DNA from: Macrostomum lignano
Lineage: Eukaryota
Direction: 5' to 3'
DNA length: 64,000 bases
Assembly: GCA_002269645.1 (NCBI GenBank)
Contig: NIVC01000042.1
Coordinates: 124,001 to 188,000, forward strand
Made by a program: the position numbers and the translations under genes. This document shows, piece by piece, positions 18,192-59,299 of the stretch. A model generated the notes under the pieces. That model had not been told where the DNA came from, made no database searches, and saw nothing but the letters and a program-made list of their open reading frames with translations. Each line of letters opens with the position of its first letter. Positions within the stretch are counted from its first letter, which is position 1.

Positions 18192-18257
<66 letters not shown>

Positions 18258-18443: not shown

Positions 18444-18482
<39 letters not shown>

Positions 18483-20535: not shown

Positions 20536-20756
20536 TCAAAGAAGGGTTAGTGGACCCTAGAAAAGCTTCAGCTTATATTAGCACTGAAAGCAGAACGGAC
20601 TGTAGAATTAAAAGATTCAAAAGCAATTAATTAAACGCGACATGCTTTTAAAGGTGCAGCGAAATTGTCTATAATCAAGAAGCACGATTAGCACCGGATA
20701 GGTAAAATTTATGCATATTTATTTTGAGGCCCTCAGCAACAGAAAGCAGTCATAAA

Positions 20757-21659
20757 TCATTTAGCTGTCAACAGATAATAGTGATAGAAGAGTTCGGGCA
20801 AATTGTACAGCAGCCGACGCTCCTCGTCTCTGAACGCCTCCAGCAGCTGGATGTCGTACAGGTCGCTGTACAGCGCCTTCACCTGATCAGCATCGACGCA
20901 GAACGGGGGGCCGGGATGCAGCGCCCTGGGAAACACGGTGGTCTCCAGGAGGATCCGATGGCTAGGCCGGCACAGAGAGTGCAACAGTGCCACGTAGGCT
21001 CGCCTATCCGCCGAGTTGATCACCACCAGGGAGCCGCGGTCCCACACTAGGTCTGACTGGCCAGCTTCCAGCCGTCTCAGAGCCGGATGGAACAAATCCC
21101 CGCCGTACAGCTGGACAATGCCAGACCGGACCCGGTGCAGGCCCGGGCACAGGTCTGTGCGGCCAGGCGGAGGCTGCAGATGCAGACGGCGGAACACCGA
21201 CTCGCCGCCGAGGTCGACGCCAACAACGCCGGAGACGCCAGGCTGCTCCGAGAGCCAGGTTAGGTCTAGGCTGGCACCGCATAGCGGCACGAGCACCTGC
21301 TGCTGCTGCTCTGCCGCCTCATCCTTCGGCTTCAAGCCCGAACGCAGCGCTGCCCAGTGCCGCACTAGGAACGGATGCACCTGCGGCCGGTGCCAGCGAG
21401 GCCAAGCTGCCGCCCCGGGCCCGCCGTCAGCATCGGGCGGAGTCAGCGACTGCCACCGGTTCAACCAGTACTCGTGACTGAACTGCGGCTCGGGAGGCGT
21501 CGAGTTGTCATTGTTCTTCGGTGCCTGCTGGCCGATGCCGCCGCTGCGAATGCCGCGATGGCCATGGCGAAGGACTGATGGCGATAGAAATTGGCGGCAC
21601 TGCAACAGCCACTGCAGCCGCTGACGGGTGGCGGTGGCGGGACCGACTAGGGCTGGCAT
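20757..21659 (-). CDS. TPMT: Thiopurine S-methyltransferase family protein (300 aa, intronless)
   Basis: Motifs YWLNRW, WHRPQVHPFL, VLVPLCGASLDLTWL, GDLF, WDRGSLVVIN and HPGPPFCV match animal TPMT (PLCGK, WDRGALVAIN, HPGPPFYV). AATAAA on the minus strand at ~20718-20723. Confidence 0.9.
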   Translation of the reverse strand: MPALVGPATATRQRLQWLLQCRQFLSPSVLRHGHRGIRSGGIGQQAPKNNDNSTPPEPQFSHEYWLNRWQSLTPPDADGGPGAAAWPRWHRPQVHPFLVRHWAALRSGLKPKDEAAEQQQQVLVPLCGASLDLTWLSEQPGVSGVVGVDLGGESVFRRLHLQPPPGRTDLCPGLHRVRSGIVQLYGGDLFHPALRRLEAGQSDLVWDRGSLVVINSADRRAYVALLHSLCRPSHRILLETTVFPRALHPGPPFCVDADQVKALYSDLYDIQLLEAFRDEERRLLYNLPELFYHYYLLTAK

Positions 21660-29500: not shown

Positions 29501-30190
29501 TTCAATAAAGTGCTCTCCAACTCGACCGTCTTCAGAATTCAAGTGGAGAACCCCTTGGACCCCTTGAAGCGATTTTTGTCACGGTAACGTTTTCAATGGG
29601 TCAGGGGCCGGACTGTCTCATTGTAAGGCAGTGTACACGCACACTGTGTCTTGGAGCTTGGCCCTCATGGTGCTGCTACTTTGCCCACTCCAACCTCATG
29701 AAGAGGCACAGCGCATGATAAAACGCAACACTTTACACACCTGCATTCGCTGGCCATTGAGATCGGCGCCATTCAGCTTGTTCTGAGCTGTTGACGCCTC
29801 CTTGTAGTGCTCAAACTCAACCAGCGCGTAGCCTTTGATGTAGCCGGTTCGCCGGTTCAAATTTAAATGAAGGCTCTTCACCTCGCCGTACTCGTTGAAC
29901 TTGTCCATCAGATCGTCCTCGGTGGTCTCCTCGTGCAGGTTGCGCACGAACAGAATCCAGCCCTCCACTGAGCGCTGCGGACCGGCAGTGTCTCCGTCGT
30001 CAATGCCGACAGCGTCAAATTCCATCGTATCGTCGCGATCCTGCTCGGATTCGAAGCCGCGACCTTTGCGACTTTTGGCGCTCTCTTTAATCAAGCGGAC
30101 GCCTTCGTCGCCGCCGCCGCCGCCAACGACCTGTTCAAAATCATCTTCGGTGTCCTCCGTGATGCGAATTATGTCTCTGGTGTCGGCCAT
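23598..30190 (-). CDS. RBM8A: RNA-binding protein 8A / Y14 (exon junction complex core), 2 coding exons, 187 aa
   Basis: Exon 1 30190-29741 (MADT...RKGRGF...[13 protein letters not shown]...[20 protein letters not shown]...NGQRMQ, donor GTGTGT). Exon 2 23711-23598 (acceptor TTTCAG; VDWGFTRGP...RSRSR*, stop TAA). Phase 0 join completes the RRM. AATAAA on the minus strand at ~23474. Confidence 0.93.
24586..25308 (+). CDS. gag: Gag with CHCC zinc knuckle (240 aa)
   Basis: KLPTFW...[13 protein letters not shown]-terminus and [18 protein letters not shown] (CX2HX9CX3C), the motif characteristic of the CsRn1 clade. Confidence 0.93.
25281..28406 (+). CDS. pol: Pol (protease-RT-RNaseH-integrase), reached by -1 frameshift
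   Basis: [10 protein letters not shown] (PR), YIDD (RT), VDASD...FTDHKPL (RH), [24 protein letters not shown] (IN) and a GPF motif. No stops in the -1 frame relative to gag. Confidence 0.96.
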
Positions 30191-31014: not shown

Positions 31015-32000
31015 ACTAAACTCTATCTGATACTCGTAGATTACTAGACTATCTGAGATTTCAAAACTCTATCTGACAGATTACTGAACTCTATCTGACA
31101 GATTACTGAACTCTATCTGACAGATTACTGAACTCTATCTGACAGATTACTGAACTCTATCTGACAGATTACTGAACTCTATCTGACAGATTACTGAACT
31201 CTATCTGACAGATTACTGAACTCAATCTGACAGATTACTGAACTCTATCTGACAGATTACTGAACTCAATCTGACAGATTACTGAACTCTATCTGACAGA
31301 TTACTGAACTCTATCTGACAGATTACTAAACTCTATCTGACAGATTACTAAACTCTATCTGACAGATTACTAAACTCTATCTGACAGATTACTGAACTCT
31401 ATCTGACAGATTACTAAACTCAATCTGACAGATTACTAGACTCTATCTGACAGATTACTGAACTCTATCTGACAGATTACTGAACTCAATCTGACAGATT
31501 ACTAAATTCTATCTGACAGATTACTGAACTCTATCTGACAGATTACTGAACTCAATCTGACAGATTACTGAACTCAATCTGACAGATTACTGAACTCAAT
31601 CTGACAGATTACTGAACTCTATCTGACAGATTACTAAACTCTATCTGACAGATTACTAAACTCTATCTGACAGATTACTAAACTCTATCTGACAGATTAC
31701 TAAACTCAATCTGACAGATTACTGAACTCTATCTGACAGATTACTAGACTCAATCTGACAGATTACTAAACTCTATCTGACAGATTACTGAACTCTATCT
31801 GACAGATTACTAAACTCAATCTGACAGATTACTAAACTCTATCTGACAGATTACTGAACTCTATCTGACAGATTACTAGACTCTATCTGACAGATTACTG
31901 AACTCTATCTGACAGATTACTAAACTCTATCTGACAGATTACTGAACTCAATCTGACAGATTACTGAACTCTATCTGACAGATTACTGAACTCAATCTGA
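31015..32000 (+). repeat. 22-bp minisatellite (ACTCTATCTGACAGATTACTGA)
   Basis: About 44 units starting ~70 bp downstream of the LAMTOR5 stop. Confidence 0.98.
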
Positions 32001-32068
32001 CACAGTAATACACTTACTTAATTACAGGCACCCATCAGAATCCAGACTGCAGTGCTATTAAAGCAGAC

Positions 32069-38609: not shown

Positions 38610-39942
38610 CGAGGGGATCGAAGTAAAAAAGTAATGATAATTTTGTTGTAACGGCTAATAGCTCGTAATATAAGAGGTATTGAACTGCAACTTGTTTCAT
38701 TTGAAAAAAAACATTTTTGTTCTTTATTTGACAGTTTTGGTTCTTCTAAAGTGATTGATTTCTGCATGGTGACACTGTAATCACAGTATACCCTTTGAGA
38801 AATAGAAAATTCAAAAAATCGAAGCTTGCACTAACATGAAGTTTCTTGTGAAACTTGGTTGGAAGCCGACCGAAATCATTGACGATTTGAAGAAGGTCTA
38901 CGGGGACATTGCTCCACCAGATCCGACCATTTACCGATGGATTCAGGCTTTTAAGGAAGGCCGAGAGTCTGTGGAAGACGCTCAGCAGTCTGGAAGGCCC
39001 ACAACATCGCGCACAGAGGAAAATGTGGCAGCTGTGCAGCAGGTACTTGAGCAGGATCGGCGCGTGACCATAGGCGATATTTCTGACCAAGTGAGCATCT
39101 CTCATGGCAGTGCTCACTCCATTGTGACGGACTGTCTTGGTCTGAGCAAGCTGAGTGCCCGCTGGGTCCCGCGGCTGTTGCGGCTTGCACACCGGGTTCG
39201 GCGCACTGAGTGCGCCATCAACCTGCTGAACCACTTGGACGCTGATTCAGAAAACTTTTACCTGCGCTTAGTAACCGGGGATGAAACATGGATATTTCAG
39301 TACAATTCCGAGTCCAAGGTCCAATTCAAGGAGTGGCTGCCACAAGGTCTGCAGCGAAGGTCTTGGCGACCATCTTCTGGGATGTTGAGGGAGTGGTGAT
39401 GGTGGACTTCTTGGAAAGCCAGAAGACCATCAATGCCACCTATTATATGAGTTGCTTCTGTGAAAGCTCCGCTCCGAACTGGTCAAAAAGCGACCTGGCA
39501 AGCTGCACCGTGGGATTCTCTTTTACTACGACAATGCACCAGCAAGGACTACTAGACTAAGTAATAACGAAGTGTTCCTAGTGGTCCTTGTGCACCAGCC
39601 CACACTTCTCGGCTCTGCCGTGAAGTCCTGCGAGATTTCCGCTGGGAAATCCTCCAGCATCCTCCATATAGCCCTGATTTGACTCCTTCGGACTTTTTTG
39701 TTTCCCAAGCTGAAGGAAGCAATCAAAGGAGTCCAACATGAGGACAAAGAGGCTGCCAAAAAGGCTACTGTACTGTGGCTTGCTGTACAGCCTCCTGAGT
39801 TCTACGCAAACGGCCTGGAGAGATGGCGATACCGCATGGAGAAGTGCCTGACCCTGGAGGGGGACTATGTAGAAAAGTAGATTCCCATTTGAAGTTTGAC
39901 ACTCGTGAGAACAAAATTATCATTACTTTTTACTTCCCCTCG
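38610..39942 (+). mobile_element. Mariner (DD34D, SETMAR/Mos1-like) DNA transposon with frameshifted transposase
   Basis: TA TSD (38608-09, 39943-44). TIRs CGAGGGGA(TCG)AAGTAAAAA(A)GTAATGATAATTTTGTT and its reverse complement. Transposase from 38836: SGRP, WVPR, VTGDETW, DNA..H, HPPYSPDLTPSDF and GDYVEK* spread across frameshifts. Confidence 0.93.
39543..39590. mobile_element. 48-bp hAT-type micro-element inserted in the mariner
   Basis: TIR CAAGGACTACTAG...CTAGTGGTCCTTG (12/13 match) flanked by 8-bp TSD TGCACCAG (39535-39542, 39591-39598). Interrupts the DNAPAH motif. Confidence 0.85.
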
Positions 39943-41180: not shown

Positions 41181-42250
41181 TTATAACTTCTCAACATAAT
41201 TTCCACCCAAATTGGAGCACTTCTGCAGGCGCTGGAACCATGCGTCGAAGCACCGCCTGAGATCAGCTTTGGTGAAGCTGTCCAGCTCAGCTTGCAGCGC
41301 AAAAACTAGCTCCTCCCTCGAGTCGAAGCGCTTCCCCTTTAGATTTTTTTCATCCTGGGAAAGAGGAAAAAGTCGGCAGGCACCTGGTCCGGCAAATATG
41401 CCGGAGGCGGCAGTTGGACGAGGTGGGTCGCCTGAAGAAACTCCTGGGTCACTCGTGCCCAGTGCGCCGGAGCGTTCTTCTGATGGAGGAAGATGCCTTT
41501 GTCGAGCGTCTTCGGCCGCTGCTGTGCAAGCGCCTGCAGAACCTGAGGCAAGCAGACGGTGCTGTACCATTCTGCCGTCACTGTGGCGCCTTGCTGCAGC
41601 AGCACTGGCGGCAGGATGCCGCTGCGTCGGAAGAAAATGGCCGCCATCACTTTGCCGACGCTGCGCTCGCGACGAAATTTGAGAGGAGCATCTTCCTCGT
41701 TGGTGACCCACTGCCGACTCTGCTCCTTGGTCTCTGGGTCGTAGAAGTAGACCCAGGTTTCGTCACCAGTGAGGATGTTATCCACCAACTTTGAGCGGCC
41801 TCCGTCAAACCTGGCCGCCATGAGGTCGGCGAGGTCGGCGAACGCATCTGGTCAACGCTGGTGGGGCACCCAGCGAGCGGACAGCTTCCTCATGCCGAGG
41901 TGCTGGTGCAGGATCATAATGATGGTGGAATTCGACACCCCGACGAGCTGCTCCAACCAGCGAATCTTCACTCACTGATCTTCGTCCACGTGGCGTCGAA
42001 CAGCAGCAACGATTCCGTCGGACACGGCCAAACTTGGCCGCCCCTTGCGAGGATCGTCGTCCTACTATGATGGCGCTTGATCCTGAAGAGCCTCACGCAG
42101 CTTCTGGAGGCAGGCGGCCGCAAAGCTGCCCAACCGAAACAGGACCAGGTTCGCCACTTGCCTGTCGCGGTCAGTCAGCTGTGGCAGGGGGGGAGGTACT
42201 TTTTCAGCCAAATTTTAGCCACTGCGGCGCATCATTACGACAGATTAAGC
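41181..42250 (-). pseudogene. Second, degraded mariner transposase
   Basis: DDDPRKGRP, HLGMRKLSARWVPH, ILTGDETWVYFYDPETKEQSRQW, HQKNAPAH (catalytic D lost), ADFFLFPRMK and GGNYVEKL. Frameshifts and stops. TIRs not securely seen. Confidence 0.88.
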
Positions 42251-43793: not shown

Positions 43794-45913
43794 ATGGAAG
43801 CCTTCAAGGAAGCCTGGTTCGCCATTGACACTCAGGGCAAGCTGCAAATCAGCGCAGAAGATCTGCAAGCCTACATGCAGAAGAACAACTACGATGAGAG
43901 CTTCGTGAATGTGAGTTGCTCGGGTGGCCTCAGGGTCCAATAGATGGCCAGAAACAGCCAAAGCCTATTACTAGAGCTGCTCATCGCACATTGCAGAAAT
44001 GGTTGAACCTGTTCGACGAAGACAAATCGGGCACCATTGAGCTGGAAGAGTTCTGCGATGTGCTCGGACTCAACTATAAGGAGACGTGAGAACTATAAGG
44101 ATACGGTCCACTTCTGGGGTTCAAACGGGTTAGAGGTCCTGGCTTCTTATTGGAGGTCAGGTGATCGGGTTCGAGGTCAGGTGATCGGTTCAAGGTCAGG
44201 TGATCGGGTTCAAGGTCAGGTGATCGGGTTCAAGGTCAGGTGATCGGGTTCAAGGTCAGGCATTCGAGTTCGAGGTCAGGTGATCGGTTCAAGGTCAGGT
44301 GATCGGGTTCAAGGTCAGGCATTCGGTTTCGAGGTCAGGTGATCCGGTTCGAGTTTACCTAGTGTTTCATGCCGGAATTAATTCTTTATTATCAGGTTTT
44401 AAGTTCGAGTCAAAACTTAAAATATATGTTGGAAAACTAGAAATCTAGAATATCAATAATAATAACCAAATATTGTTTCTCGTCCGGTTTTGTGTTCCCC
44501 GAAACCGAAAAAAGGAGTAAACCCAAACGAACCCGATTCCAGGATGAGTGAAGTCCGCGAGAAAGCGGCCAGCGGCGGCATGCCCAACGGCGTGGTTGTC
44601 GTCTACGCTGAGATGGAGCTCTCCTGGCAGATTAAGATCGCCCAGCTCTGCCTAGAAGGACTGCGCGTCAATAAAAAAACTAAGGTTCGTATTATAATTA
44701 CAGATTCGTAGAGTGGTAATGCGTCTAATTCTCGTAACTGAAGTTCCCGAGTTCGATTTTTTCGTAGCGGGTACATTGGATATGGGTCAGCCAACCCCTC
44801 AGGGCACTTAGGCAGGTTTACATGCCATCCTCTCTGGGTTTGGCCAAATTTGGCATGAAATCCCCATTTCATGATATCAAATCCAATCCATCTATCGGAT
44901 GTCAGGATTTCTAGTCAACTAGCCAGACAAGCTAGTGACTTCGTGACTCCATTTCGGTGCTAAATTAAGTGTACATCCACCATCCGGTTGGTTTCTTTTG
45001 AAACGTGAACTTTTAAAACTTCTCCAAAGTGAAGGCAGCCAGGCACCACGATTTCCGCATAGAACCAGAACTGCCTAGCGCAGCCCGATGTCAACTTCAG
45101 TTCTCGATCTCTTATAGGACTCTCTGAAAAGGAGACAGGAGACAGCCCAAGACCCGCTCTGAACCAGCCTGTCGAAACCAAATCGGCAGACCCAATCACC
45201 CTTTTCCCGCGTCCTCTTTAAATTTTCTCACTCGTCATGGTCCACAATAGCGAAAAAACCATCATTCTTACTTTTTGTCCTCCTCTCTGTGCTCCTCCGC
45301 AGAATTTTAACAAAAGCAGAAGTCACTATGGCCCTCTAACAAACTAAATATCAACTAGCTGGATCAATTGCAGGGCTAACTATGACCGATGTCCTATAGG
45401 TCGCAAAGAACCGTCATTTACTCAGCTTTTTCATTCCAGCATTCAAATTGTCTCTCATTTACACCAACCTTTTTTTACACTTTTACTGACTTCACTCTTA
45501 CCCAAATATTGAAAATTTTATCTTTTTTTTCTTTTTTAACCAAATCTTTTTACAATGCGTAGACAAAGCAGTAAAGCTGGTATCTAAATTCGTACTCCCT
45601 GTCCCTCTGTACGCATATGTCCGATATCTCTGTGAGGACCCAGTAGCCCAAAGCCCCCTGCGAACTATAACTGAACTTATAAACTACTAATCATATCAAA
45701 AATAGTTATGAAATCATAACAAATTTGTTTAAATCATTACAGGACGTCCCCATCTGGGTTAAGAAGAAGGCTGACGAAATGTACGGCCGCCTCTGGCACC
45801 TGGTGCTGCTGAATGGCCAATTCTGGTGCGACTTCGGCTACGCGCCCGGCCACGCGTTCATCTTCAAGTTTGAGAAGCACATCTTCCTGATCTGGAAGAC
45901 GCCCCTTCCCTAG
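43794..45913 (+). CDS. TAL-like protein A: EF-hand pair + dynein light chain-like domain (~172 aa; may have an extra 5' exon)
   Basis: Exons 43794-43910, 43997-44085, 44543-44684 and 45743-45913 (phases 0,2,0). EF2 loop DEDKSGTIELEE followed by FC..LGL. C-terminus YGRLWHLVLLNGQFWCDFGYAPGHAFIFKFEKHIFLIWKTP resembles the schistosome Sm22.6 C-terminus. The frame is open upstream to an acceptor at 43740. Confidence 0.88.
44155..44345 (+). repeat. 20-bp minisatellite (GGTCAGGTGATCGGGTTCAA) in TAL-A intron 2
   Basis: About 9 units starting ~70 bp after the donor. Confidence 0.93.
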
Positions 45914-46261
45914 CTGAACTAAGGAGGCCTGGTCCCGGACTCAACAGTAGAACTGTCATACTTAGAACAAAACTCAATAACAAATATTAAATGTTTTTCC
46001 AATAGGATTACTAATATAATTAGGTAATAGTCATAGATCTACCCAATCAAAATTATAGCTAGACCTATGATCAAATTTATAACAATTCCACCAAATACAA
46101 ACAACTGACAGCCATAAAACAATTAAATTTTTTGTTTAAATGCACAATCCGTTCATTTTATCCTTTTCTAAACTAGAACAACAAAGCGGCTTATTTGTAA
46201 GTGAAATTAATAAATAATATAATTTCAACTGAGGGGGACGCGGATTTTAGCGATAATAGTG

Positions 46262-46775
46262 GAGGCGCCATATTATACACGAGCGGGGCGCCCTAATGTA
46301 CATGAGAGGGGCGCCATAATATACACGAGCGGGGCGCCATAATATACACGAGCGGGGCGCCATAACATACACGAGCGGGGCGCCCTAATGTACACGAGAG
46401 GGGCGCCATAATATACACGAGCGGGGCGCCATAATATACACGAGCGGGGCGCCATAATATACACGAGTGGGGCGCCCTAATGTACACTAGAGGGGCGCCA
46501 TAATATACACGAGAGGGGCGCCATAATATACACGAGAGGGGCGCCATAAGATACACGAGAGGGGCGCCATAATATACACGAGCGGGGCGCCCTAATGTAC
46601 ACGAGAGGGCGCCATAATATACACGAGAGGGGCGCCATAATATACACGAGAGGGGCGCCATAATATACACGAGAGGGGCGCCATAAGATACACGAGAGGG
46701 GCGCCATAATATACACGAGAGGGGCGCCATAATATACACGAGAGGGGCGCCCTAATGTACACGAGAGGGGCGCCA
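46262..46775 (+). repeat. 23-bp minisatellite (GGGGCGCCATAATATACACGAGA)
   Basis: About 22 units. A C-rich CTCAAATCCGCCCCTG MITE-like end follows at ~46880-46896. Confidence 0.96.
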
Positions 46776-48494
46776 TACTGGGAAAACTGAGGGTGGTGAG
46801 GACCTTTTTTAGCCCAAAGGAAAAGGGGTAACATCATCGCCAGCTACAAAGGAAGAGGCGGCCGCCCCCCACCCCCCCCCCTCAAATCCGCCCCTGCTTT
46901 TGTCTAATCTTTGGTCTAAATCAGGTTTTTAGTGATCAGATGTTGCAACAAGTTACGATTAGTGGCAAGTCCAGACTATCTGTGAAATTTGTTGGTTCGT
47001 TAGCAAAGCTGGAAGAACACAAAGTAACTAGAGCTAAGAGTAATCAATCATGAAGTATCAAACACAAACAACATTGAAATCGATTATTAATAACAAAATA
47101 CAAAGTAAAGATCAAATCGTGCCATTTAGGCTCAAAACCTGCTAAATATAAAACGTGCGATTGCTTGCCTACTTACAGCAGTGCATGGCGAGAGAAAAAC
47201 GATAGCATACACAACAGAAATAAACGAAAGAGTTCAGTAAATAACGTTCGGGAACACACAAGGATCATCTGGTTGAATAGTTCATCAATAGTTAAATCTC
47301 TTTTTTTCCTTTTCTGTCAGTTGCCGCAGAAGCTCGGGCATCATTCAGAATGCTTGGATTGGACAATTCTGCGTCAATCAACTGTTGCTGTCTCTAGACC
47401 AGACCAGTCCACTGACTATCTGCCTCTAGTATTGATTCCGGAGTGAAACATGGTTAATTCCGATTAACCCATACCGATATGACGGTTCATAGGGCCTTTC
47501 GTTACAGTGGAATGGCCAAATGTCTATGGTCAAAGCTCACTGAAAAATGAAGCCTGAGAATTCAAAACCTGTGAACCGGTGAACAGGTCTCAGAAAGAGG
47601 CCTGAGGACAGAGCAAGAAGCGAAAAAGCGAAAAAATGTGTATTTTTTAAAACTGAACTGAAACTGAAACTGAGCATGAAAAATACAGTTTTAATGAATA
47701 CACTGAGAATACGCAACCGTGTTGTTCTCACCGTTTATGAACACCCGCATCTTTTCTTCGAAACTAATTGAGCGGCATTTTCTGCCTTTGCCTCTCCTCA
47801 AACTATGTTGTTAAACACCTTGATTGTCCATCGCAGCTTCTTGCGCGTTGACTCCGGCTCTAATTCGTTCCCGGAGACGATGTCAAATCTTGAGGGCTCA
47901 TGTTCTCTTACTCCTACTCATTGTTGTAGGTTGTGCAGCCAGTCCACTCGCTCTGTAACCTCTGCCTTATCCCTTCGTTTTGCTCCTATAAAATAGTATT
48001 GTCTTTGCCTCTTCTAATTCTGTGTCGATGGCAGAAAGGGCTGTCTGCCTACTCTTCGACTAGTAATACATTTTCCGTTCAATTCTAACAAACCTCGCAT
48101 TCAATTTTATCCCAACATTTTTCGGCGCGCTGTTTTTTAGTGTACTGTATGAATCATTAACAGCCCCCCTCAAGCTAACAGCCATATACTAAAAATGTTT
48201 ATGGCTCTCTATATCATCCCTCTTTAAACTGAGAGCACTCTTTGAAGTTCGCTTCCAGAAGACAAGTGTGATATCTTAATAACTGAGGCAGTAGTGTTGA
48301 ATGATAGGAGTGAGAAAAGTGCTCGCTTGAGAGCTTGGCTGACTTTTGTTTATTAGTTTAGCAATGAGGTGGTGCATGGGTGCAGACAGATACAAGCGCG
48401 CATGGTGTGGGGTTGAGTACAATTCACTAAGCCGGTAAATAACAATGACAGGCTTTTACTGCGGCCTCCAGGTCTTTGTCGATACTTGGGAACA

Positions 48495-49510
48495 AGACGG
48501 GGGCGCTTTCATTAGGCCGAAATTTCACTTCGCCGAAAAGCAGCCTCTTTCACTAGGCCGAAACTTCACTAGGCCGAAACTTCACTTTGCCGAAATGACT
48601 AGCATGCTCTTTCATATGGCCGAAACTTCACTAGGCCGAAACTTCACTTTGCCGAAAAATGATTTTAGCAGCCTCTTTCACTAGGCCGAAACTTCACTTT
48701 GCCGAAATGACTAGCATGCTCTTTCATATGGCCGAAACTTCACTAGGCCGAAACTTCACTTTGCCGAAAAATGATTTTAGCAGCCTCTTTCACTAGGCCG
48801 AAACTTCACTAGGCCGAAACTTCACTTTGCCGAAATGACTAGCATGCTCTTTCATAAGGCCGAAACTTCACTAGGCCGAAACTTCATAATGCCGAAAAAT
48901 CATTTTAGCAGCCTCTTTCACTAGGCCGAAACTTCACTTTGCCGAAAAATCATTTTAGCAGCCTCTTTCACTAGGCCGAAACTTCATTAGGCCGAAAAAT
49001 CATTTTAGCAGCATCCTTCTTACTAATGGTCGAAAGGGTATGTGCACTTTAAGACTCCAAAATGGAACCGCAAGCAAGCAGTGGCGATTTCTCTCCACCA
49101 GTTTCTTTATTTTGACCTAAGTGTTACTGCTACTAAAGTGGGAGCACGATATTGTCACTCAATATTGCACCGGCCTTCGCAAGGCGCAACCAGAGCCCAT
49201 CGGGTTAAAGCCCATTAAAGTGCCAATTTACACTTTTACATTTACGCTACCGTGAAATCCGCTGCTGATCTGGATCGTACACGTAGACTTAATCAAGTTA
49301 ATTAAATTAATTTTACTGTGGCGTAACATGTCGTACTCAATAAAAATTTTCGCTCTATATTTCTTATTTCTAAGACTCCATGTCAGTTTCGGCCTAGTGA
49401 AAGAGGCTGCTAAAATGATTTTTCGGCAAAGTGAAGTTTCGGCCTAGTGAAGTTTCGGCCTTGTGAAGGAAGATGCTTTCGGCAAAGTGAAATTTCGGCC
49501 TAGTGATACC
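48495..49510. mobile_element. Fold-back element with modular arms (CACTAGGCCGAAACTT / CACTTTGCCGAAA)
   Basis: Left arm 48495-49010 is an array of these modules. Right arm 49385-49510 carries their reverse complements and ends TTTCGGCCTAGTGATACCCC. Confidence 0.8.
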
Positions 49511-49514
49511 CCCC

Positions 49515-50680
49515 TACAAGACGTAGCTTCTCGCGAGGGCGCGCATGCGGCTGATGCCAGGGTGGGCTTGGTGCAGCTCGTTCAACACTTGTCGCAGGGC
49601 GGCTGGCATCACAACTTGAGCGCCCTACAGCACGCAGACCTGGTCAATGGACAGCTCGCTCTGGCGCCTGGCGAAGCCGGTCAGGTCGGCGCAGATGCTT
49701 GAACCCGTCTGCAGGCAGCGCAGCACGCGACCTAGCACCGCATTCGTCCTGGTGAGCCACGCTACCGTTGCTGCAGTGGCGGCCGAACCTGCACCCTCGT
49801 CGATCAGCAGCGAGTTAACCGCTGTCTCCTCCTCGGACTTCTGCGGCAATGGCAGCCGGGACAGCGAGGCGAGTCGCAGTTGGGTGCTTCTCCGTCGGCC
49901 GAAACTCAAGCGTGTAGTCATAGCTCACCAGCCGGATCATCCACCGCTGCATGCAGGCTGCAGCGTGTGCTGGGATCCCTTTCGCTCGCTTAGTAACCCG
50001 AGTAGCGGCAGGGGATCAGTTACCATGGTGAATCTCCGGTCGTAGAGGAATTGATGGAAGCGGTGCAGCCCGAACATTATGGCCAGCGCTTCCTTGTCGA
50101 GCTAGCGAAGCGGTTCAGGGTGCGGCTAGCAAATGCCACTGCGCAGTCTTTGTTGTCGATGCGATGGGACAAAACCGCTCCCACTCCGTAAGGTGAAGCG
50201 TCACACTCGAGTGGCAGCGGCAGATCCGGATTGTATAGTGCATCAGCACTGGTGAATGGAGCAGCAGACGCTTAGCCTCGCTGAAGGCGGTTTGCTGCGG
50301 CTTGTCCCACTTCCAGCGAACGTCCTTAGCCAGCAGCTGATTAAGCGGCGCCACTACGGTGGAATAGTTGGGCAGGAACCGGCCGTACTGGGTCAGTATG
50401 TCCTTCGGCGCTGGGGCGTCTTGAATTGCGGCCACCGGTTAGCAGGTTGAATCCACATGCGTCAATGCGATAGCCCAGATACTCGACTGAGTCCATGAAC
50501 AACTGGCTCTTTTGCTTGTTCAGTCTGACTCCCGACTCAAGGAGGCGCTGAAAAAACTTCTTCCAGGTTTTTCTTATGTTGCTGCATCGTCTTGCCGGTG
50601 ACCAGAATGTTATCGACAAACACCTGGACAGAGTCGAGATCTAGCAAGGTGACTAGCGTCCGTTGGAAGATCGCGTGTAA
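49515..50680 (-). pseudogene. Gypsy pol relic (RT-RNaseH-integrase zinc-finger region)
   Basis: Frameshifted FVDNIL, FQRLLESGVRLNKQK..FMDSVEYLGYRID, YGRFLPNYSTVVAPLNQLLAKDVRWKW, and ELH.AHPGI.RMRALARSYV. Truncated at the fold-back element. Confidence 0.85.
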
Positions 50681-50729
50681 GCAATGCATGCATTGGCGTT
50701 GCTTCTAGTCAATGGTTAAATAGTACATT

Positions 50730-51730
50730 AATACCCATGCTTTACGGGCGTTAATGGGAAAATCAGAGGGCGCCGTTAGGCGCCCGAAGAGTTCTCATTG
50801 TCATTAATTTTTGCGGGCTTAAGCGTCCCTTTTCCGGGCGTCAATGTGGCAATTCGTGCCTTGAATTGTCTATGGTATTTTCTATTTCAGTAATAGAGCG
50901 AAATAGAACAACAGTGTGAAACAGAGGCCAACAAATAACAGCAGAAGTTTATGCGCTTATAAGCATGCAAAGAGAGACGATCAGTTAGTTAAATTAAATT
51001 AGTCTTTCAGGCCGTGGAAATCGAACGTACAATTTTGAAATGTTCCAGAGAAATTCACACTGACCGATGGAGCTGGCGCAGCCTGCTCAACTTTCATTTC
51101 ATTTCTTCCAGAAAAGTCTTGAAGCGGCTCACATTGTCCTCCATCTGCCGGGCGGAGGAGTCCGGTATTCCATCTCGTTCAAGCTGATTTAACTCTTGCA
51201 TCACGTCCTCCGGAATGTCGAGAATCTCTTCTGATTCTATCTTGCGCGCAAATTCTTCGCTCAGTTCCTCCAAATATCGGCTGTTCGACTCGGATGATAC
51301 CCACGCCAGCTCTTCGGTCGACATACCGGAAACCATTTCTCCCGGCAGATTGGAATAATTAATTAAATGGTTGATCATTTTCAGAACTCAAGCACAGCTT
51401 AGTCCTGACAGATTTGAAAAAAATATATATTTAGCATTTTTCTAGCTCCTTCAGTTTTACTGTCCATCTCTAGACCTGGACCATCAAAACTTCGTCTATG
51501 GCCCCGAGCTCGCAAATCAAAAGAAAGAATGGCTATAGACATTTCAACTGCATTCTATGTAATAACACAGAGCCCGGAATTTTCGACATTGATGCCCGGA
51601 AATCTCTTGCATTAATGACAATAATATAAACATTACTTTTTGCGGGGCATCAATGTGCATCAATGTGCTACGCGCCCTCAAAATTCTACATTGATGCCCG
51701 CAAAAAGCAATATTAATGTTATAGTGTTGT
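50730..51730 (-). mobile_element. Possible internally deleted Crypton-like (DUF3504 tyrosine recombinase) element
   Basis: Imperfect inverted repeats 50796-50859 / 51572-51622 flank ORF 51094-51378 (…LERDGIPDSSARQMEDNVSRFKTFLEE) and an out-of-frame tail SVNFSGTFQNCTFDF*. Family assignment is recalled resemblance only. Confidence 0.4.
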
Positions 51731-52884
51731 TTGATTCATTCCTGCACAGAAAACGTATGGAACCCCACCATTGAATTTAGTTAGAGAGGATTGAACCATG
51801 GACAGAGTACTGAAGCGAAAATAGAAGACATGTCAATCCAGTCAAGATTCAAGAAGCTTGAGAGAAAGGAGTTGAGGGAAGAAGAACCGAGCAAAAAATG
51901 ACAAAAACTATCTATATCGACCGTTTTACTATAAATTAGGTAACAGTGCCTGGCCTTCCCTCGGATGCGCTGACTAATTTGTCAACGAAAAGCAAGCTGG
52001 ACAGCGAAGAAACTCTCGCATTGTCCCTGGATGTCTTACTGTCTTACAAGACAAACAATTGTACTGCCATTTGTCAAGTGAATGTGACTTGTTTCACAGT
52101 TTTCTTCCAGTTAAATATACCGATATTCGTTGTGTCATACAAGTGCAGAAAGTCTGCAAAGCTAGCATATAAAAATTGTGTTTTTCAACGTCAGACAACA
52201 ACTGCAGCAATTATATTAATTTCATTCAGCGTCTATTCAATAGCATTCATAAATGTTGCCAAGTTCAGGCATTTAGTGCATGGTCCGAGCAGCGTCTGAG
52301 TTCATCAAGTGCCCCCGCGCGGGCGACTCAACCCACCCTCACCCCCTCTCTAAAACTTCAGACGCAGCCAGGGGTCACTGGGTGCGTCCAAAAATTAGCC
52401 GCCGCCCTCATTGTATTGGAGTCGCACAATGAACCCCGGGAGTTGTCTGCTTACAGGTTGCGCGTCTCTAGTCGAGGCCAGAACTTCCATTGCTACGTGA
52501 ATGCATCAGTAGCTTTTCTGTGCGTTACTGCCTATAGATCCTCAGATTCCAGAGGAATTTCGGCCAACTTGAATAGCCCCCTCCCCCCTGGATAGCAGAC
52601 CTGTTCGGACTCAGGCCGCTGCTGGCTTTTCTTGCATTTTACGCGACAATAAGCGACCAAGGGTGGGTGGGGCTTGAGGCCAGGTCTCAACCCTTAGAAA
52701 AATGCCTGCGTTTGCTAACCTTTGGCAGCCTCTGAAAAGTCTGGCTGTTTCTAGGTAGGGCATTCAAATATTCAGCCTAGACTGAGCTGCAGCACAATTC
52801 CAGGTAGTAGGTAAGGTGCTGCTAGCAACAACAGAAAGAATACGCAAATTTGCTGATAGTTAGAGATACATGTAGAAGGTAGAT

Positions 52885-53141
<257 letters not shown>

Positions 53142-53461
53142 ATCTCACTTGGACAATGAGCTTCAGAAGCCGCTACTAACTGAGCTGGTTAGTCTCAGTG
53201 CATATTTTGCATTCGGGCAGACAATTCGTATAGCTGCATAAAACTCACAATAAGTCTGGAAACCAGATAGAGTGTAGCTGGTGCAGGCAGTCTGAAGGAG
53301 GGAGGGAGTGGCGGAATGCACTCGAATTCCCACTGGTCAGACGTGGCAACAGTAAAACCAACTGCTAGGGCCCCTCTGTTTATAAATCAAGCCGGGCCCA
53401 ACCGGGTGCCCTCGCACGCGCCTAAAAACAACCCCCCCCCTCAATGCGGCGCCGACGTCCC

Positions 53462-53470
53462 TATAAATAA
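53462..53470 (+). promoter_or_regulatory. TATA box candidate for TAL-B (TATAAATAA)
   Basis: Consensus TATAAA ~100 bp upstream of ATG 53564 in a GC-rich context. A second TTTATAAAT lies at ~53380. Confidence 0.45.
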
Positions 53471-53563
53471 ACCCCCTTGGGGCGGCGGCCTGCTCGCCTC
53501 TCCACCGCTCCAGCGCGCAGCTCAGTTTAAATCCTTTTTTTTGTCATCCAACGCCCGAACAAA

Positions 53564-54369
53564 ATGGATAGGCGAGACCTGGAACTGTTCAAGAATGTCT
53601 TCGTGGATCTGGACCCTCTAGGCACCGGCCAAATCAGCATCCAGCAGATGTGGCCCTACTTCAAGCGCAACAGGATCCCGGACGCCAAGATCAACGTAAG
53701 CTCAGCTTATTACTAGCAGCCCGTGCCTGTTTCTTACAGCTTTGCAAAAAATCCATAACTTACCATTTGCAGCTGTTCATGAACACCTTCGACCACGACA
53801 ATGACGGCTACATCACCCTGGACGAGTTCTGCCGGGTTTTCAGCGTGTCCAGGGCCGAAGTGTGAGTAACCCGCAGTGGCGACCGAGGTTTAACTGATGA
53901 TGGCTTTTATTCACCCAATTGATCAATCACACTCTTCTTTTCTGTTGTGCTTCCAGCCTGGGCCAGACCGTGACCTACGAGACCCGCAGCCGGGTGGCCA
54001 GCGGCCTGCCGGCAGGAGTGACGTACATATCCGGTGACATGGACATCGCCTGGCAGATCAAGATCGCCCAGCTGTGCATCGAGACGCTGCGCTCCACTAG
54101 CGTCCTGAAAGTTAGTGGAACTGCAGTTCTGATGCATTGCAACGGTCCTGTCTCTGTGTACCTAGTTATTGAACTAGTTTAACCTATTGAATTTTCAGGA
54201 GGTGCCCAGGAACATCAAGACCTCGGCTGATCGCATGTTCAACAATCTGTGGCACATTGTCATGGTGAACGGCCAGTTCTGGTGCTACTACGGTCACGAG
54301 CCCGGCTATTCATTCGTGTTCAGCTTCGAGAAGTATATCTTCGTGGTGTGGAAGACGCCAGCCATGTGA
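53564..54369 (+). CDS. TAL-like protein B: EF-hand pair + dynein light chain-like domain (181 aa)
   Basis: Exons 53564-53695, 53773-53861, 53957-54110 and 54199-54369 (phases 0,2,0). EF2 loop DHDNDGYITLDE-FC. C-terminus FNNLWHIVMVNGQFWCYYGHEPGYSFVFSFEKYIFVVWKTP. Confidence 0.92.
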
Positions 54370-54889
54370 ATGCCTAACATGGGAATGCCGCGGCGAAATT
54401 TACATATAATTAAGTACTTAGGGAATAATGTTTATTATTAGATACAAATCCAAATCAAATCCATTTATAGATTCTATAAAAACCTATTAGATTTTAATAC
54501 TGTCGCATCTTGGGAAGTAATTTTTTCTTTTGAAAATACGTCACTGTTTAGGAATATTTATTTCAAATATATTTGAAGTATATCAACATTCAACAAGATC
54601 ACAATTTACTTATCTGAAATTTGCTGTCTGTCTGTCTATTTTCGCTCGTACTTACTCAAGCTACAGCGGTGCAGAAATTTTTCTTGGGCAACGGATTGCT
54701 CAGCTCTTACTTCTTGGAAAGTACTTGTGGCTTGACTACAAAGACTGAGGGTAGCTGACCATATTGTGTTATATTGAGAAGGCCCAAAGCGAGTTAAAAC
54801 GAGTTTGAAATGAACATCAGGCCCATGAGGATGTCTATGGCTAAAATGATATTGATTTGCTGCGTCTGCAACACTCGTCTGGGTAGCCT

Positions 54890-55553
54890 GCCTGGGGGGT
54901 CTTTCTCGAAAGCAACTTACGATCGACCATAGACGTAAGTTGGATAAGCTACACTTACGGGTTGCTCGAAAGGCTCGCAATTTAGCTATGCGTAAGATTG
55001 ATCGCAACTTTACGAGTTCGTAACTTTGCGCAAAAGTTACGAACTTTTGAACGAGTGAACGTGAAGGAATTCCATTGTCGGATGATTCGTCGTGCAGGAA
55101 TGCACAAAACCGTGCAGGAATGAATTTCTGCGCCTAATGCTTCTTCAGTGAGATTTTACCATAGACATTTTCTCGAAATGTTCGTATGTCTATGGTCTTT
55201 CGTAAGGTTGATCTTAACCCTACGACTGCTCGGTATCAATCGTAAGACGCACTTAAGCACTAATCGCATAGTGCGTGAAGCTTTAGTCAAGCCAAGTCAA
55301 GTTAAACTTTATCGAAGGTGGGTCTTTCTCGAAAGCAACTTACGATAGACTAAGTAAAGATATTTGCAGATTTATGACCATAGACATGCAACTTTTCGTT
55401 TCAGATACGACTTACGAACAGCGTAAGCCACGCAAAGTCTAAGTGAGTTTTGAGAAAGCGTCTTACGAGCAAACTTACGCTACACGTAAATTTCTTTCTT
55501 ACGATCTAACTTACCATAGAACTTACGTGAGTTTCGAGAAACACCCCCCTGGT
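54890..55553. mobile_element. Non-autonomous TIR element (possibly PIF/Harbinger-like)
   Basis: CCTGGGGGGTCTTTCTCGAAA at the left end and TTTCGAGAAACACCCCCCTGG at the right end. Internal CTTACG/CGTAAG and CCATAGAC motifs. Confidence 0.55.
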
Positions 55554-55821
55554 TGGATCCGAGCCGAAACGCGTGATATTTTACGTTTAGCTGGGTTCAG
55601 TCCTCTACTGCCGATTAATAAGCCTATTCCCGTATAGCAATCAAACGTCCCTAACGTCCATCGATGTCGCTAAAAAGAATTTACCGCACGCATGGACTAT
55701 AAGAGGGATAAGAGGGCTTTATAATTTATTTTAATTAAGTGACAACAGCAATGGAAAATATTTTTGCCTGCGAACATGTAAGTTTCAGTCCTAAATTTCG
55801 GTACCTCGGCTGATAGAATTA

Positions 55822-56270
55822 GTTCAGTAGCTTAGGTAGAATTGGGTCAGTAGCTCAGGTAGAATTGGTTCAGTAGCTCAGGCAGAATTGGTTCAGTAGC
55901 TCAGGCAGAATTGGTTCAGTAGCTCAGGCAGAATTGGTTCAGTAGCTCAGGCAGAATTGGTTCAGTAGCTCAGGTAGAATTGGTTCAGTAGCTCAGGTAG
56001 AATTGGGTCAGTAGCTCAGGTAGAATTGGGTCAGTAGCTCAGGTAGAATTGGGTCAGTAGCTCAGGTAGAATTGGTTCAGTAGCTCAGGTAGAATTGGGT
56101 CAGTAGCTCAGGTAGAATTGGTTCAGTAGCTCAGGTAGAATTGGTTCACTAGCTCAGGTAGAATTGGGTCAGTAGCTCAGGTAGAATTGGGTCAGTAGCT
56201 CAGGTACTGAGACAGTAGCTTAGGCAGGAATAGCTCATTAGCTCAGGTAGAATTAGACCAGTAGCTCAGG
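55822..56270 (+). repeat. 23-bp minisatellite (CAGTAGCTCAGGTAGAATTGGTT)
   Basis: About 17 near-perfect units plus a degenerate tail. Confidence 0.96.
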
Positions 56271-58472
56271 TAGACCTAAATAAATTTAATAAGTTGAATA
56301 CGTGCGGGAATTTACAGCACGGTGGTTGGAATTTACAGCACGGATTGGGATTTACTGCACAGTCGCGTTATTGGTGAAGGATTGCTTTTTGGCCATAGAC
56401 AATGAATAGTGTCAGCAATTTAAGAATGCTTGGCCATATGTCAATGATATATTCCTGCACGGTCACGAGTGCACGATGTCCTTCACGCACGAGTGAACGT
56501 GAAGGAATTCCATTGTCGGATGATTCATCGTGCAGGAATGCACAATACCGTGCAGGAATGCATTTCTGCGCCTAATGCTTTTTCAGTGAGATTTTACCAT
56601 AGACATCCATTCCTGCACGCAACAGAGTGCAAGAATGCCATTCTTGCATGGAAAATCAGCCGACAATGAAGGCAGTCGTGCAGGAATTAAATAATCTATG
56701 GCCAAATCTCCACTGTTTTACACATGGACATCGTGCAGGAATGACACTCTCCGTTCCTGCACGCAAACAATTTATTTAAAATTGTACGCAAATGTATGGG
56801 GAGGAGAGAGAATGTACACAGAGAGTGTGGAGGGAGGAAAAAGTGCAGTAATCATTCATTGCTATGCGATTTCGTCTAATGACATTGACGAAGGAAGGAA
56901 TCGAGGTGGGGGGAGAGTATCCAGCTTAGCAGTGGATATTTACATCCGATATTGAAAAGTTACAAGGGACAGTTCTCACAAGTAATGGAAGCCTAATATA
57001 AAGTGCAATATGTGATCTGAAGATTGTGCGACACACCATGACCGACGCATGTCCATCACTGGTTGAACATTTGAAACGACGGCACCCCGGTAGCTTACAA
57101 AGCGCCGCGGGATCGCTCACAATTGTCACGGCTAGTCGCCAGTGACAAGTTGCATAGAATCCGTTTACACTGCGTTCGGACTTGTGAATTGCTATTGTCC
57201 CAAATTCATGACGTCACTATTGACTTGCTTCCCACCATGCTCTACAAAGAGTCGCACGATGAGAATTCTAGAAATTATTTGAATGCATCTGTAAGAGTCA
57301 TCTTAGAACCCCAAAAGTTAACGCCAGTGAAAGAAGAGAGCTAAGCCTTTTTATTTATAGACACTGTAAAACAGGCCTACAGTCGATTCTGAGTCCAGAG
57401 TGGCCATAGACAACAATTTTTGCTATCCGTGACTTGTAACTTGTCGAGTAAATACACAAGTGCGATCCTTGCAATGCGAACTAGTCACTTGTATACAACA
57501 GACCCAGAGCGCAATGCTTTAGTGAGCCTGTAAGTAATGGATTTAGTTTTGTTCTCTTATTCATAAATGCTAAAATTGATCCTAAAAAACTAATTCTCAA
57601 AGTTAGCAGAGAAAATCACTTGGTCGACGCTCTCTGAGTCTGGGTTCCTCTCTGAGTAGCTCCTCCTACGACTGAAATTCCTAGGTGGTATGCAATGGCA
57701 TTGATCGACTTTTTATAACCGCTCGAAGTCTCGCTCTAAGGCTTGCTTTAATTGGAAGAGAGTACTGGCGAGGCCATAGAGATGCTCTTTTACTGTCTCA
57801 CTGTTGGAAGTTGGCAGAAAGTTGGAGCATGAAAAAGTTTTGTCACGTTTAAAACGTTATGGAATGCCTACGCTTGAGGTTGGAAATTCACCTGATGCAG
57901 AATTGCATTCGCAGCGGCCCAGATCAAAAAGCACTGTCTCAATCGACCAAATAAAATGAAAACTAGTTTTCTGTCTGTCGGTTCAGTGAGTGCAGCTGGG
58001 GCGTGTTAAGGCAGTGCTCAGACTCAGAAAATAGCAACTTACCAAACCGAACTTCCCCACCTCTCCTTTCTAGGGGTCAGTAAAGTTGCAATCTATGCTT
58101 CGCATTGTGCAGGATTCTCAGCTAAAGCAGTACCAGCCACGTCTGAGCGAGGAATACTGCGAGTACTGCGAGGAATGAGAATCTGACAATCCTAAGCAGT
58201 ATCAGGGTAAAGGAGCGGAGAGGTGGTGTTTGGCGTAGCTGATCTGGCTATTCAAGCCCTGCATTTTACTTTTTAGTCTAAGCTGAGGTTGCTGCTTACA
58301 GTTGTTTGTGGCAGGCAACACCATCAAGGCAAGCTGCAGCAGCCCCAAGCCCATTTTTTCGTCTACACAGGAAACACTATAAAAACTTTCTTAGAAATTG
58401 CTACAGTCATCGCTCAGCTTTCGTATTCAGAATCTTTTCTACACTGTCCCTAAGTGTGCAGTCGACGAGATC

Positions 58473-59299
58473 ATGTCTGCCATTGACCGGGAAGATATGA
58501 ACATCTTCAAGGAGGCCTGGATGAGCCTGGATCCAAATGGAACTGAACGTAGAGTGAGAGCTCAGGAACTAGGGGTCTACTTGAAAAAGATAGGCATCCA
58601 AGATAGGAAATTCGATGTAAGTCCGATGCCATTTTTATTCACAGTGTATATTTTTCCGTTCAATCAACTTGATGCCCTCGACGCTCAATTTGGCAGCTCT
58701 ACATGAACGCGTTTGATAAAGACAACGACGGCTGCATCACTCTAGAGGAGTTCTGCCGGGTGCTACGGATGACCGAAATTGAAGTGTGAGTACATGTGCA
58801 TAATACATGTACATCTGAACCAATCTGTATTACATGTAGCTAAGCAATTTAATTAGTGACAACAACTCTTAACTTTCAGCGTGTCCACCGTTGTGTTTGA
58901 ACAGCGCGTGAACGTCGAGGGCGGCAGCGGTCTGCCGCAGGGTGTCCAGATACTGTTCGGAGCTCAGACATCCGAACTCGAGTGGCAAGCGAGGGTGGCG
59001 CGGCTCTGTCTTGAAGGACTTCGGTTCGATGCGGACTTGAATGTGAGAACAGAAGTCATTCCTAGTTTAAATTTCTTCCGTTTTCGAGCACATGTTTACA
59101 TAAACATCTGTCGTCCATTGCATTGCAGAAAGTGGTGAAGTGGATCAAGGAGACTGCTGACGAGCGCTTCACCCGACTGTGGCACTGCGTCATCGTGAAG
59201 GGCCAGCACTGGTGCTTCTTCAGCTACGAGCCCGGCTATGCCTTCGTGCTCCGCTATGACAAGTACGTCTTCATCATCTGGAAGACGCCAATGATCTAA
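58473..59299 (+). CDS. TAL-like protein C: EF-hand pair + dynein light chain-like domain (188 aa)
   Basis: Exons 58473-58616, 58697-58785, 58880-59042 and 59129-59299 (phases 0,2,0). EF2 loop DKDNDGCITLEE-FC. C-terminus FTRLWHCVIVKGQHWCFFSYEPGYAFVLRYDKYVFIIWKTP. Confidence 0.92.

Follow-up and report, generated by a model that had tools for sequence, protein, structure and literature searches.

A probable TAL/CaBP gene array in the free-living flatworm Macrostomum lignano

Introduction

TAL/CaBP proteins, in which an N-terminal EF-hand pair is fused, in a single polypeptide, to a domain at the C-terminus that resembles a dynein light chain (DLC), are major antigens of schistosomes and liver flukes and have been proposed as drug or vaccine targets. 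Recent structural papers justify the choice of these targets partly by the parasite- or trematode-specific nature of the domain fusion, and a study from 2025 describes the fusion as 'found only in trematodes' and 'parasite-specific' (PMC12347358). Is the fusion thus a product of parasitic life, or was it already present in flatworms before parasitism arose?

This question is raised by three genes, here termed g1, g2 and g3, in a stretch of 64,000 nucleotides of contig NIVC01000042.1 (assembly GCA_002269645.1, positions 124,001 to 188,000; hereafter the window) from Macrostomum lignano. The original prediction, which was made from the letters of the window alone, held that g1-g3 are three spliced genes of the TAL type, that they probably come from a free-living rhabditophoran such as Macrostomum, that the literature usually treats the family as restricted to parasites, and that, given such a source, an already diversified TAL cluster predates parasitism. 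The wording quoted above bears out the statement on the literature, and the source is indeed M. lignano, with positions 33794-55913 of the window being 100% identical to the M. lignano contig over 22,120 bp. Here we analyse the structure, relatives and age of these genes and conclude, with a probability of about 0.85, that g1-g3 are members of a tandem array in M. lignano which belongs to the flatworm TAL/CaBP family.

Results

Gene structure and domain composition of g1-g3

Exons from the list of open reading frames (ORFs) and from the raw sequence were joined at GT-AG sites, which yielded three complete reading frames (Table 1). The predicted interval, 43794-59299, proved to be exact, starting with the ATG of g1 and ending with the last base of the g3 stop codon. 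All introns are of the GT-AG type and occur in phases 0, 2 and 0, exon 2 invariably comprises 89 nt and exon 4 171 nt, and the three proteins share 44-47% pairwise identity. A tblastn search of the whole 64-kb window with the three proteins found no further copies. All three proteins are already deposited in NCBI or UniProt as uncharacterised entries: the g1 protein is identical to M. lignano BOX15_Mlig022705g1, the g2 protein is 99% identical to Mlig010873g2, which is located on a duplicate contig (see below), and the g3 protein corresponds to UniProt entry A0A1I8HKM1, except that this 167-aa model lacks 21 residues of exon 1, i.e. the exiting helix of EF-hand 1. The use of an upstream GT as donor (GTGAGA, at ~58554, read by eye) would explain the shorter model. 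In support of the 188-aa model, it can be aligned with every paralogue, and the NCBI annotation of the g3 counterpart on the duplicate contig NIVC01000459.1 is identical to it.

In each of the three proteins, Pfam domain EF-hand_7 scores 31.6-39.4 bits (gathering cut-off 30), EF-hand_1 and EF-hand_6 likewise exceed their cut-offs, and Dynein_light (PF01221) scores 39.7-46.9 bits (cut-off 29.1) and spans the C-terminal 75-85 residues (aa 86-169 in g1). These matches are far beyond chance and, together with the intact four-exon frames, confirm three intact TAL-type genes as predicted, each encoding an EF-hand pair and a C-terminal DLC-like domain. The 12-residue loop of EF-hand 2 is canonical in g1 (DEDKSGTIELEE, aa 46-57), g2 (DHDNDGYITLDE, aa 51-62) and g3 (DKDNDGCITLEE, aa 55-66), and all three loops fit the 12-residue consensus as judged by their residues and are thus candidate Ca2+ sites. 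The loop of EF-hand 1 is degenerate (DTQGKLQISAED in g1, DPLGTGQISIQQ in g2 and DPNGTERRVRAQE, with one additional residue, in g3). Near the C-terminus, the conserved residues of the motif that had been proposed are present, but its literal spacing is matched by none of the three proteins; the true spacing is W-H-x5-G-x2-W-x6-P-x12-F-x2-W-K-T-P, and the residue following the conserved Trp, for which His or Gln had been allowed, is His in all three and never Gln. By eye, an N-terminal hydrophobic signal-like segment is visible in none of the proteins (no predictor was run), and thus these proteins of ~20 kDa are probably cytosolic.

The AlphaFold2 model of the g2 protein (mean pLDDT 84.7) consists of an N-terminal half with four helices and two short strand pairs, as typical of an EF-hand pair, a disordered linker (residues 79-87) and a DLC-like C-terminal domain with the order strand-helix-helix-strand-strand-strand. 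In a Foldseek search with this model FhCaBP4 ranks first (E 1e-13, 186 columns), followed by the DLC-like domains of CsTAL3 and FhCaBP2 and then by dozens of LC8 chains (TMt 0.8-0.86, ~2 Å rmsd).

Relation to the TAL/CaBP family

According to Fitzsimmons et al. 2012 (PMC3317908), a TAL protein contains an N-terminal EF-hand pair and, C-terminal to it in the same polypeptide, a type 1 dynein light chain domain, and it is similar to SmTAL1-3 with E < 1e-16. Both domains are identified in g1-g3 by Pfam, the second one also by the predicted fold of g2. As to similarity, the g2 protein aligns over its full length with Schistosoma mansoni Sm21.7 (SmTAL2) with 23% identity and an E value of 7e-23, which refers to a pairwise search space and is thus not strictly comparable with the published threshold, Sm21.7 being the one of SmTAL1-3 that was compared directly. 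The g1 protein and the Clonorchis 'Tegument antigen' (G7YAJ7) likewise align over their full lengths (36% identity, E 4e-42). A sequence search of all solved structures with g2 ranks full-length FhCaBP4 first (PDB 9voa, E 4.5e-17, residues 5-180 versus 10-190), followed by the 20.8-kDa tegumental protein of Clonorchis (CsTAL) and FhCaBP2, and stand-alone LC8 and calmodulin-type proteins score far lower. Thus, the Pfam domains, the full-length matches to FhCaBP4, Sm21.7 and the Clonorchis protein and the Foldseek ranking agree with the TAL/CaBP architecture that had been predicted.

Two other classes share one of the domains. LC8/DYNLL proteins are stand-alone DLCs of ~89 residues, whereas g1-g3 comprise 172-188 aa including the EF-hand pair, and both the PDB sequence search and Foldseek, with g2 as query, place them nearer to TAL DLC-like domains than to LC8. 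Calmodulin and troponin C contain four EF-hands in two lobes, whereas g1-g3 have one EF-hand pair with one canonical loop. An occurrence restricted to parasites or trematodes does not hold for g1-g3, their source being a free-living worm; this corrects the published distribution of the family and does not exclude membership. A further test, which is no published criterion and only supports the assignment, is whether the gene structure is shared with TAL members of Neodermata, and this is the case.

Intron positions and the origin of the fusion

For this comparison we reconstructed the exact exon structures of three neodermatan genes. The gene from the monogenean Cichlidogyrus has exons of 120, 89, 166 and 171 nt and introns in phases 0, 2 and 0, i.e. 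the M. lignano pattern. The Opisthorchis felineus gene (P0019, in the same 90% cluster as G7YAJ7) has exons of 117, 89 and 322 nt, the first two being as long as those of g1; it keeps introns 1 and 2, the latter with a length of 6 kb, and differs from the M. lignano genes by the loss of intron 3. S. mansoni Sm21.7 (exons of 129, 89 and 337 nt) also shares introns 1 and 2 with M. lignano and lacks intron 3, which M. lignano has kept. Hence, intron 1 (phase 0), intron 2 (phase 2) and the 89-nt exon 2 are common to all four, and, among the genes compared, only those of M. lignano and Cichlidogyrus also have intron 3 and a last exon of 171 nt.

These structures bear on the possibility that the architecture is convergent, i.e. 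that an EF-hand pair and an LC8-type domain were joined independently in Macrostomum and that the likeness to TAL proteins is an analogy. Neither domain is rare, such fusions may happen more than once, and the identity to Sm21.7 amounts to only 23%. However, the similarity extends over both domains and the linker, the best matches are TAL/CaBP proteins rather than stand-alone LC8 proteins or calmodulins, introns 1 and 2 lie at the same positions and in the same phases around an invariant 89-nt exon in the genes of M. lignano, of one monogenean and of two trematodes, and the monogenean gene shares intron 3 and the 171-nt last exon as well. The shared intron positions, combined with full-length similarity, therefore make an independent fusion very unlikely, and on this comparison of gene sequences convergence is close to refuted.

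Extent and integrity of the array

The array does not stop at the window, as 6-13 kb past the window end two further genes lie on the minus strand. One of them, P0002 (Mlig027993g1), is annotated. The other one, apparently unannotated, lies ~6.2 kb past the window end between g3 and P0002, looks intact and has the four-exon layout of g1-g3; its protein, which starts with MDAFKNAWLAIDTQGKGK and ends with FIFIVWKTPVE, is absent from the called genes of that locus. With these two, the array extends over ~34 kb and counts at least five genes, of which three are on the plus and two on the minus strand. A collinear duplicate on NIVC01000459.1 matches positions 41-61.5 kb of the window at 94-98% nucleotide identity and carries genes for proteins of 172, 181 (P0001) and 188 aa, followed by an equivalent of the fifth gene and a copy of P0002. 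In the 1632 coding nucleotides compared, the two copies differ at 22 positions, corresponding to 16 synonymous and 5 nonsynonymous codon changes, and some introns differ by 5-10%, the divergence of introns and flanks reaching up to 10%. The synonymous excess argues that both copies are under purifying selection.

Between g1 and g2 the window contains ~4.3 kb of DNA that is absent from NIVC01000459.1. Within this DNA are a minisatellite (48508-49019) and, on the minus strand (~49.6-50.7 kb), the degenerate remains of a reverse transcriptase; the segment is either a transposon insertion in the window copy or a deletion in the other copy and is no part of the genes. Near the 3' edge of this segment an acidic ORF of 94 aa was noticed, to which Pfam gives no match. 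NIVC01000459.1 in turn carries, downstream of the g3 homologue, an isolated fragment resembling TAL exon 4 (45% identity to g3 residues 138-188). The window has nothing that corresponds to this fragment, which is probably what is left of a pseudogene.

Such a fragment, the richness of the region in repeats and transposons and the highly duplicated state of the M. lignano genome might suggest that g1-g3 are decaying duplicates, or an artefact of assembly or contamination, rather than functional M. lignano genes. We regard this as highly improbable, as the three frames and all nine introns, with canonical splice sites, are intact in both copies of the cluster, 16 synonymous changes face 5 nonsynonymous ones at a divergence of up to 10% in introns and flanks, the genes are embedded in M. 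lignano contigs of 700 and 318 kb, and at least 13 distinct paralogues occur in this species.

Distribution and age of the family

With a HMMER profile built from five sequences of M. lignano, a scan of 1.84 billion representative proteins gave 2516 matches with E <= 1e-3, 248 with E <= 1e-10 and 27 with E <= 1e-30, many of the best ones being proteins of 160-210 residues aligned end to end. It was the profile scan that found the neodermatan TALs; word-indexed homologue searches missed all of these and yielded, apart from M. lignano sequences, just a few environmental ones. With one exception (see below), all best profile matches that carry an organism name are from flatworms: trematodes (Paragonimus, Opisthorchis, Clonorchis, Schistosoma, including Sm21.7, Fasciola, Trichobilharzia), monogeneans (Cichlidogyrus, Protopolystoma) and cestodes (Spirometra, Schistocephalus), as well as further M. 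lignano paralogues (P0014, P0031 and P0200), which brings the distinct types in this worm to at least 13. Several close relatives are intact TAL-like ORFs on short environmental or transcript contigs (JGI, ENA, Logan), at whose 5' ends neither a euglenid nor the M. lignano spliced leader was recognisable. Five more close relatives are UniParc-only entries.

The exception is a complete TAL-like protein (P0011; compare P0012, L002, ENA ERZ3792527) that is filed under the phagotrophic euglenid Olkasia polycarbonata (EukProt EP01003) and stems from a single-cell transcriptome. Among named relatives it comes closest to M. lignano Mlig034129g1 (52% identity), and the entry is probably a contamination of the transcriptome by a small flatworm; if it was genuine, the fusion would exist outside animals. 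Another environmental protein, P0018 (281 aa, on a 1274-bp contig from JGI/IMG), is TAL-like with an N-rich N-terminal extension, and its source name, 'DNA-binding transcriptional MerR regulator', is a wrong label for what is a eukaryotic transcript within a metagenome.

In a neighbour-joining tree (71 sequences, 177 columns, 200 bootstraps) g1, g2 and g3 form one clade with P0001-P0009, all from M. lignano and including P0002 (94% bootstrap), within which g2 and g3 are sisters (91%). P0014, P0031 and P0200 fall outside this clade, P0031 grouping weakly (64%) with a cestode sequence. As the clade contains Macrostomum sequences only, the array arose by duplications in the Macrostomum lineage and does not consist of orthologues of separate SmTAL subgroups, i.e. 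in this tree the cluster is a recent, lineage-specific tandem expansion. In contrast, TAL genes occur on both sides of the split between Macrostomorpha and Neodermata, and therefore the family is older than the cluster and predates both Neodermata and parasitism. Thus, of the statement that an already diversified TAL cluster predates parasitism, the age of the family stands, underlined by the shared introns, but the diversification of the cluster does not; an older diversification of the family is suggested solely by P0014, P0031 and P0200, which lie elsewhere in the genome.

The statement was part of a wider proposal, according to which the cluster is an ancient diversified array with orthologues in different neodermatan subgroups and reflects a dynein-adaptor system that ancestrally sensed Ca2+ in the epidermis or in cilia and was later co-opted by the neodermis. 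The common gene structure in Macrostomorpha and Neodermata and the divergent lineages outside the main clade, with the cestode affinity of P0031, are in line with it, and, concerning cilia, LC8-fold proteins are axonemal (Foldseek matches include chains of doublet-microtubule structures) and SmTAL6 reaches its maximum in sporocysts and in the miracidium, which is ciliated (PMC3317908). However, g1, g2, g3 and P0002 are united in the Macrostomum-only clade, so that the cluster diversified after the split, and the LC8-like fold says nothing specific about cilia. Moreover, a scan of the window for RFX X-boxes, which is a weak test, gave 10 matches with one mismatch versus 9.2 expected, none of them upstream of g1-g3, and at this chance level sequence support for ciliary regulation is absent. 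We thus consider the wider proposal unlikely and favour a family that is old and a local array that is young.

Other features of the window

Putative core promoter elements are located ~95-109 bp upstream of the three start codons (Table 1). Upstream of the array the window contains a retrotransposon with long open frames for a gag-like protein (DUF7041) and for pol (reverse transcriptase, RNase H, zinc-binding and core domains of integrase), which has a GC content of 60-68% as compared to 38-50% in its surroundings. Of two single-exon ORFs with clear domains, one encodes a thiopurine S-methyltransferase-like protein (PF05724, E 8e-33), the other an RNA recognition motif (RRM) protein (PF00076, E 1e-19) that by eye resembles RBM8A/Y14, and fragments of Mariner/Mos1-type transposases contain HTH_48, HTH_32 and a partial DDE domain. 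The window is unusually dense in micro- and minisatellite arrays, with 45 rows in the output of Tandem Repeats Finder and periods from 4 to 240 bp, and several of these arrays give rise to long spurious ORFs in the ORF list.

Table 1. Positions of the array genes and of other features; numbering refers to the window unless another sequence is named.
Feature	Position	Strand	Remarks
g1	exons 43794-43910, 43997-44085, 44543-44684, 45743-45913	+	4 exons, 172 aa
g2	exons 53564-53695, 53773-53861, 53957-54110, 54199-54369	+	4 exons, 181 aa
g3	exons 58473-58616, 58697-58785, 58880-59042, 59129-59299	+	4 exons, 188 aa
Fourth gene, P0002	NIVC01000042.1 200,748-201,511	-	annotated
Fifth TAL-type gene	NIVC01000042.1 ~194,217-195,001 (L004 16511-17295; also L003 15176-16276)	-	apparently unannotated
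TATA-like element ATAAATAA	43685-43692	+	~109 bp upstream of g1 ATG; putative core promoter, from sequence only
TATAAATAA box	53462-53470	+	~102 bp upstream of g2 ATG; putative core promoter
TATAAAAA box	58378-58385	+	~95 bp upstream of g3 ATG; putative core promoter
20-bp minisatellite	44153-44350	not assigned	g1 intron 2
Copy-specific DNA	47418-51748	not assigned	between g1 and g2
Acidic ORF	51094-51378	-	94 aa, between g1 and g2
TAL exon-4-like fragment	L005 18739-18891 (NIVC01000459.1)	-	probable pseudogene remnant
Retrotransposon	24586-28406	+	gag-like and pol frames
Methyltransferase-like ORF	20757-21659	-	single exon
RRM protein ORF	29696-30190	-	single exon
Mariner/Mos1-type fragment	38836-39399	+	transposase
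Mariner/Mos1-type fragment	41339-41821	-	transposase
Satellite arrays (examples)	1-414, 2292-3697, 6423-6970, 11053-11881, 17829-18542, 19192-20536, 31065-32002, 46264-46777, 55814-56274		micro-/minisatellites

Discussion

The answer to the question posed at the outset is that the fusion of an EF-hand pair and a DLC-like domain is neither restricted to trematodes, as named matches occur in monogeneans, cestodes and M. lignano, nor to parasites, as TAL genes are present in the free-living M. lignano. A TAL family that is selectively maintained and locally expanding in a free-living worm means that the fusion arose before parasitism and is not an adaptation to a host. The selectivity of TAL proteins as targets with respect to mammalian hosts is not weakened by this finding. 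What we describe are uncharacterised members of a known family together with a correction of its stated distribution; it is no new kind of system. The correction is modest, as the sequences are public, the M. lignano proteins with their Pfam domains since publication of the genome, and as homologues throughout the flatworms had been hinted at: an expressed sequence tag (EST) comparison by Parkinson et al. 2012 lists an Echinococcus granulosus cluster 'Tegumental protein (S. mansoni)' as pan-platyhelminth, with matches in Schmidtea and M. lignano ESTs (PMC3510090, Table 3). Among the papers covered by our literature searches for TALs in Macrostomum, Schmidtea, planarians or free-living worms, none was found to describe the TALs of a free-living flatworm.

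How might these proteins work? In FhCaBP2 the D58A substitution abolishes Ca2+ binding and mutations in loop 1 are without effect, i.e. EF-hand 2 is the working site, and in trematode CaBPs Ca2+ opens helices α2 and α3, while the DLC-like domain makes a homodimer (PMC12347358). If they behave like FhCaBP2, FhCaBP4 and the SmTALs, the M. lignano proteins are each expected to be a dimeric switch with a single Ca2+ site, where Ca2+ would bind to EF-hand 2, the degenerate EF-hand 1 being mainly structural. Ca2+ binding would then open the EF-hand pair and expose a hydrophobic surface, and the C-terminal LC8-like domain would homodimerise by the strand swap known from DLC domains and may serve as a docking platform for peptides of partners or for proteins associated with dynein. 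Candidate roles in the free-living worm would be microtubule or vesicle traffic in the epidermis, or functions in cilia. The epidermis of M. lignano is ciliated and cellular, without a neodermal tegument. One may speculate that the TAL/CaBP fusion is an ancestral rhabditophoran, possibly even pan-flatworm, cytosolic Ca2+ sensor of ciliated epidermis or microtubule-rich cells that was inherited and expanded by the syncytial tegument of parasites, although we hold this to be rather unlikely. If it was true, M. lignano, which can be made transgenic, could become the first genetic model for the function of TAL/CaBP proteins in vivo. Irrespective of this speculation, the family can be studied here in a tractable free-living model.

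Several points weigh against our interpretation of g1-g3 as TAL/CaBP proteins with the properties outlined above. Ca2+ binding, dimerisation and the link to dynein are, for the M. lignano proteins, analogies. Work of the Timson group has reportedly found that SmTAL3 binds no cation and that the FhCaBPs dimerise under differing Ca2+ conditions; trematode paralogues differ among themselves, and behaviour is therefore not safely transferable between members. Even in schistosomes TAL proteins are only putative dynein subunits in vivo. In the g2 model the relative orientation of the domains is unreliable (pTM 0.53), which keeps the whole-chain TM-score to 9voa low (0.45). Finally, the deep nodes of the neighbour-joining tree have less than 50% support and do not resolve the ties of the M. 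lignano clade to particular neodermatan subgroups.

Among known systems, the Fasciola proteins FhCaBP4 (9voa), which is the top match of g2 in both sequence and fold, and FhCaBP2 (5fwz, 5fx0) resemble g1-g3 in size and in the order of the two domains. Trematode CaBPs share with g1-g3 the combination of a canonical EF-hand 2 loop and a degenerate loop 1, and a W-x-T/K-P ending at the C-terminus is common to the FhCaBPs and the M. lignano proteins. The Fasciola CaBPs differ in sequence (~23% identity to the M. lignano proteins), in their linker, which is shorter in M. lignano, and in the organism, M. lignano having no neodermal tegument; moreover, the conserved Trp is followed by Gln in FhCaBP4 and Sm21.7 (WQ), whereas the M. 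lignano proteins have WH, just like the 'WHCIV' of canonical LC8.

The SmTAL family (Sm22.6/SmTAL1, Sm21.7/SmTAL2, Sm20.8/SmTAL3; 13 members) combines, like the M. lignano proteins, an EF-hand pair with a DLC domain in ~170-190 aa, and the size of this multigene family resembles that in M. lignano (at least 13 distinct paralogues). However, the genes of the M. lignano cluster are co-paralogues of each other and not 1:1 orthologues of single SmTALs, and the tegumental location of SmTALs and their status as IgE antigens do not apply to a free-living worm. LC8/DYNLL has the same fold as the C-terminal half of the M. lignano proteins, and in a manual alignment the two correspond, including the WH motif, with a single one-residue insertion, but LC8 is a stand-alone protein of ~89 aa with ~20% identity, whereas in M. 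lignano an EF-hand pair precedes the domain in the same protein. Of the named neodermatan relatives that we tested, the closest is the Clonorchis/Opisthorchis 'tegument antigen' (G7YAJ7; for CsTAL3, DLC-like domain 5x2d), which has kept both WH and WKTP just as the M. lignano proteins have and differs from them in that it comes from a parasite.

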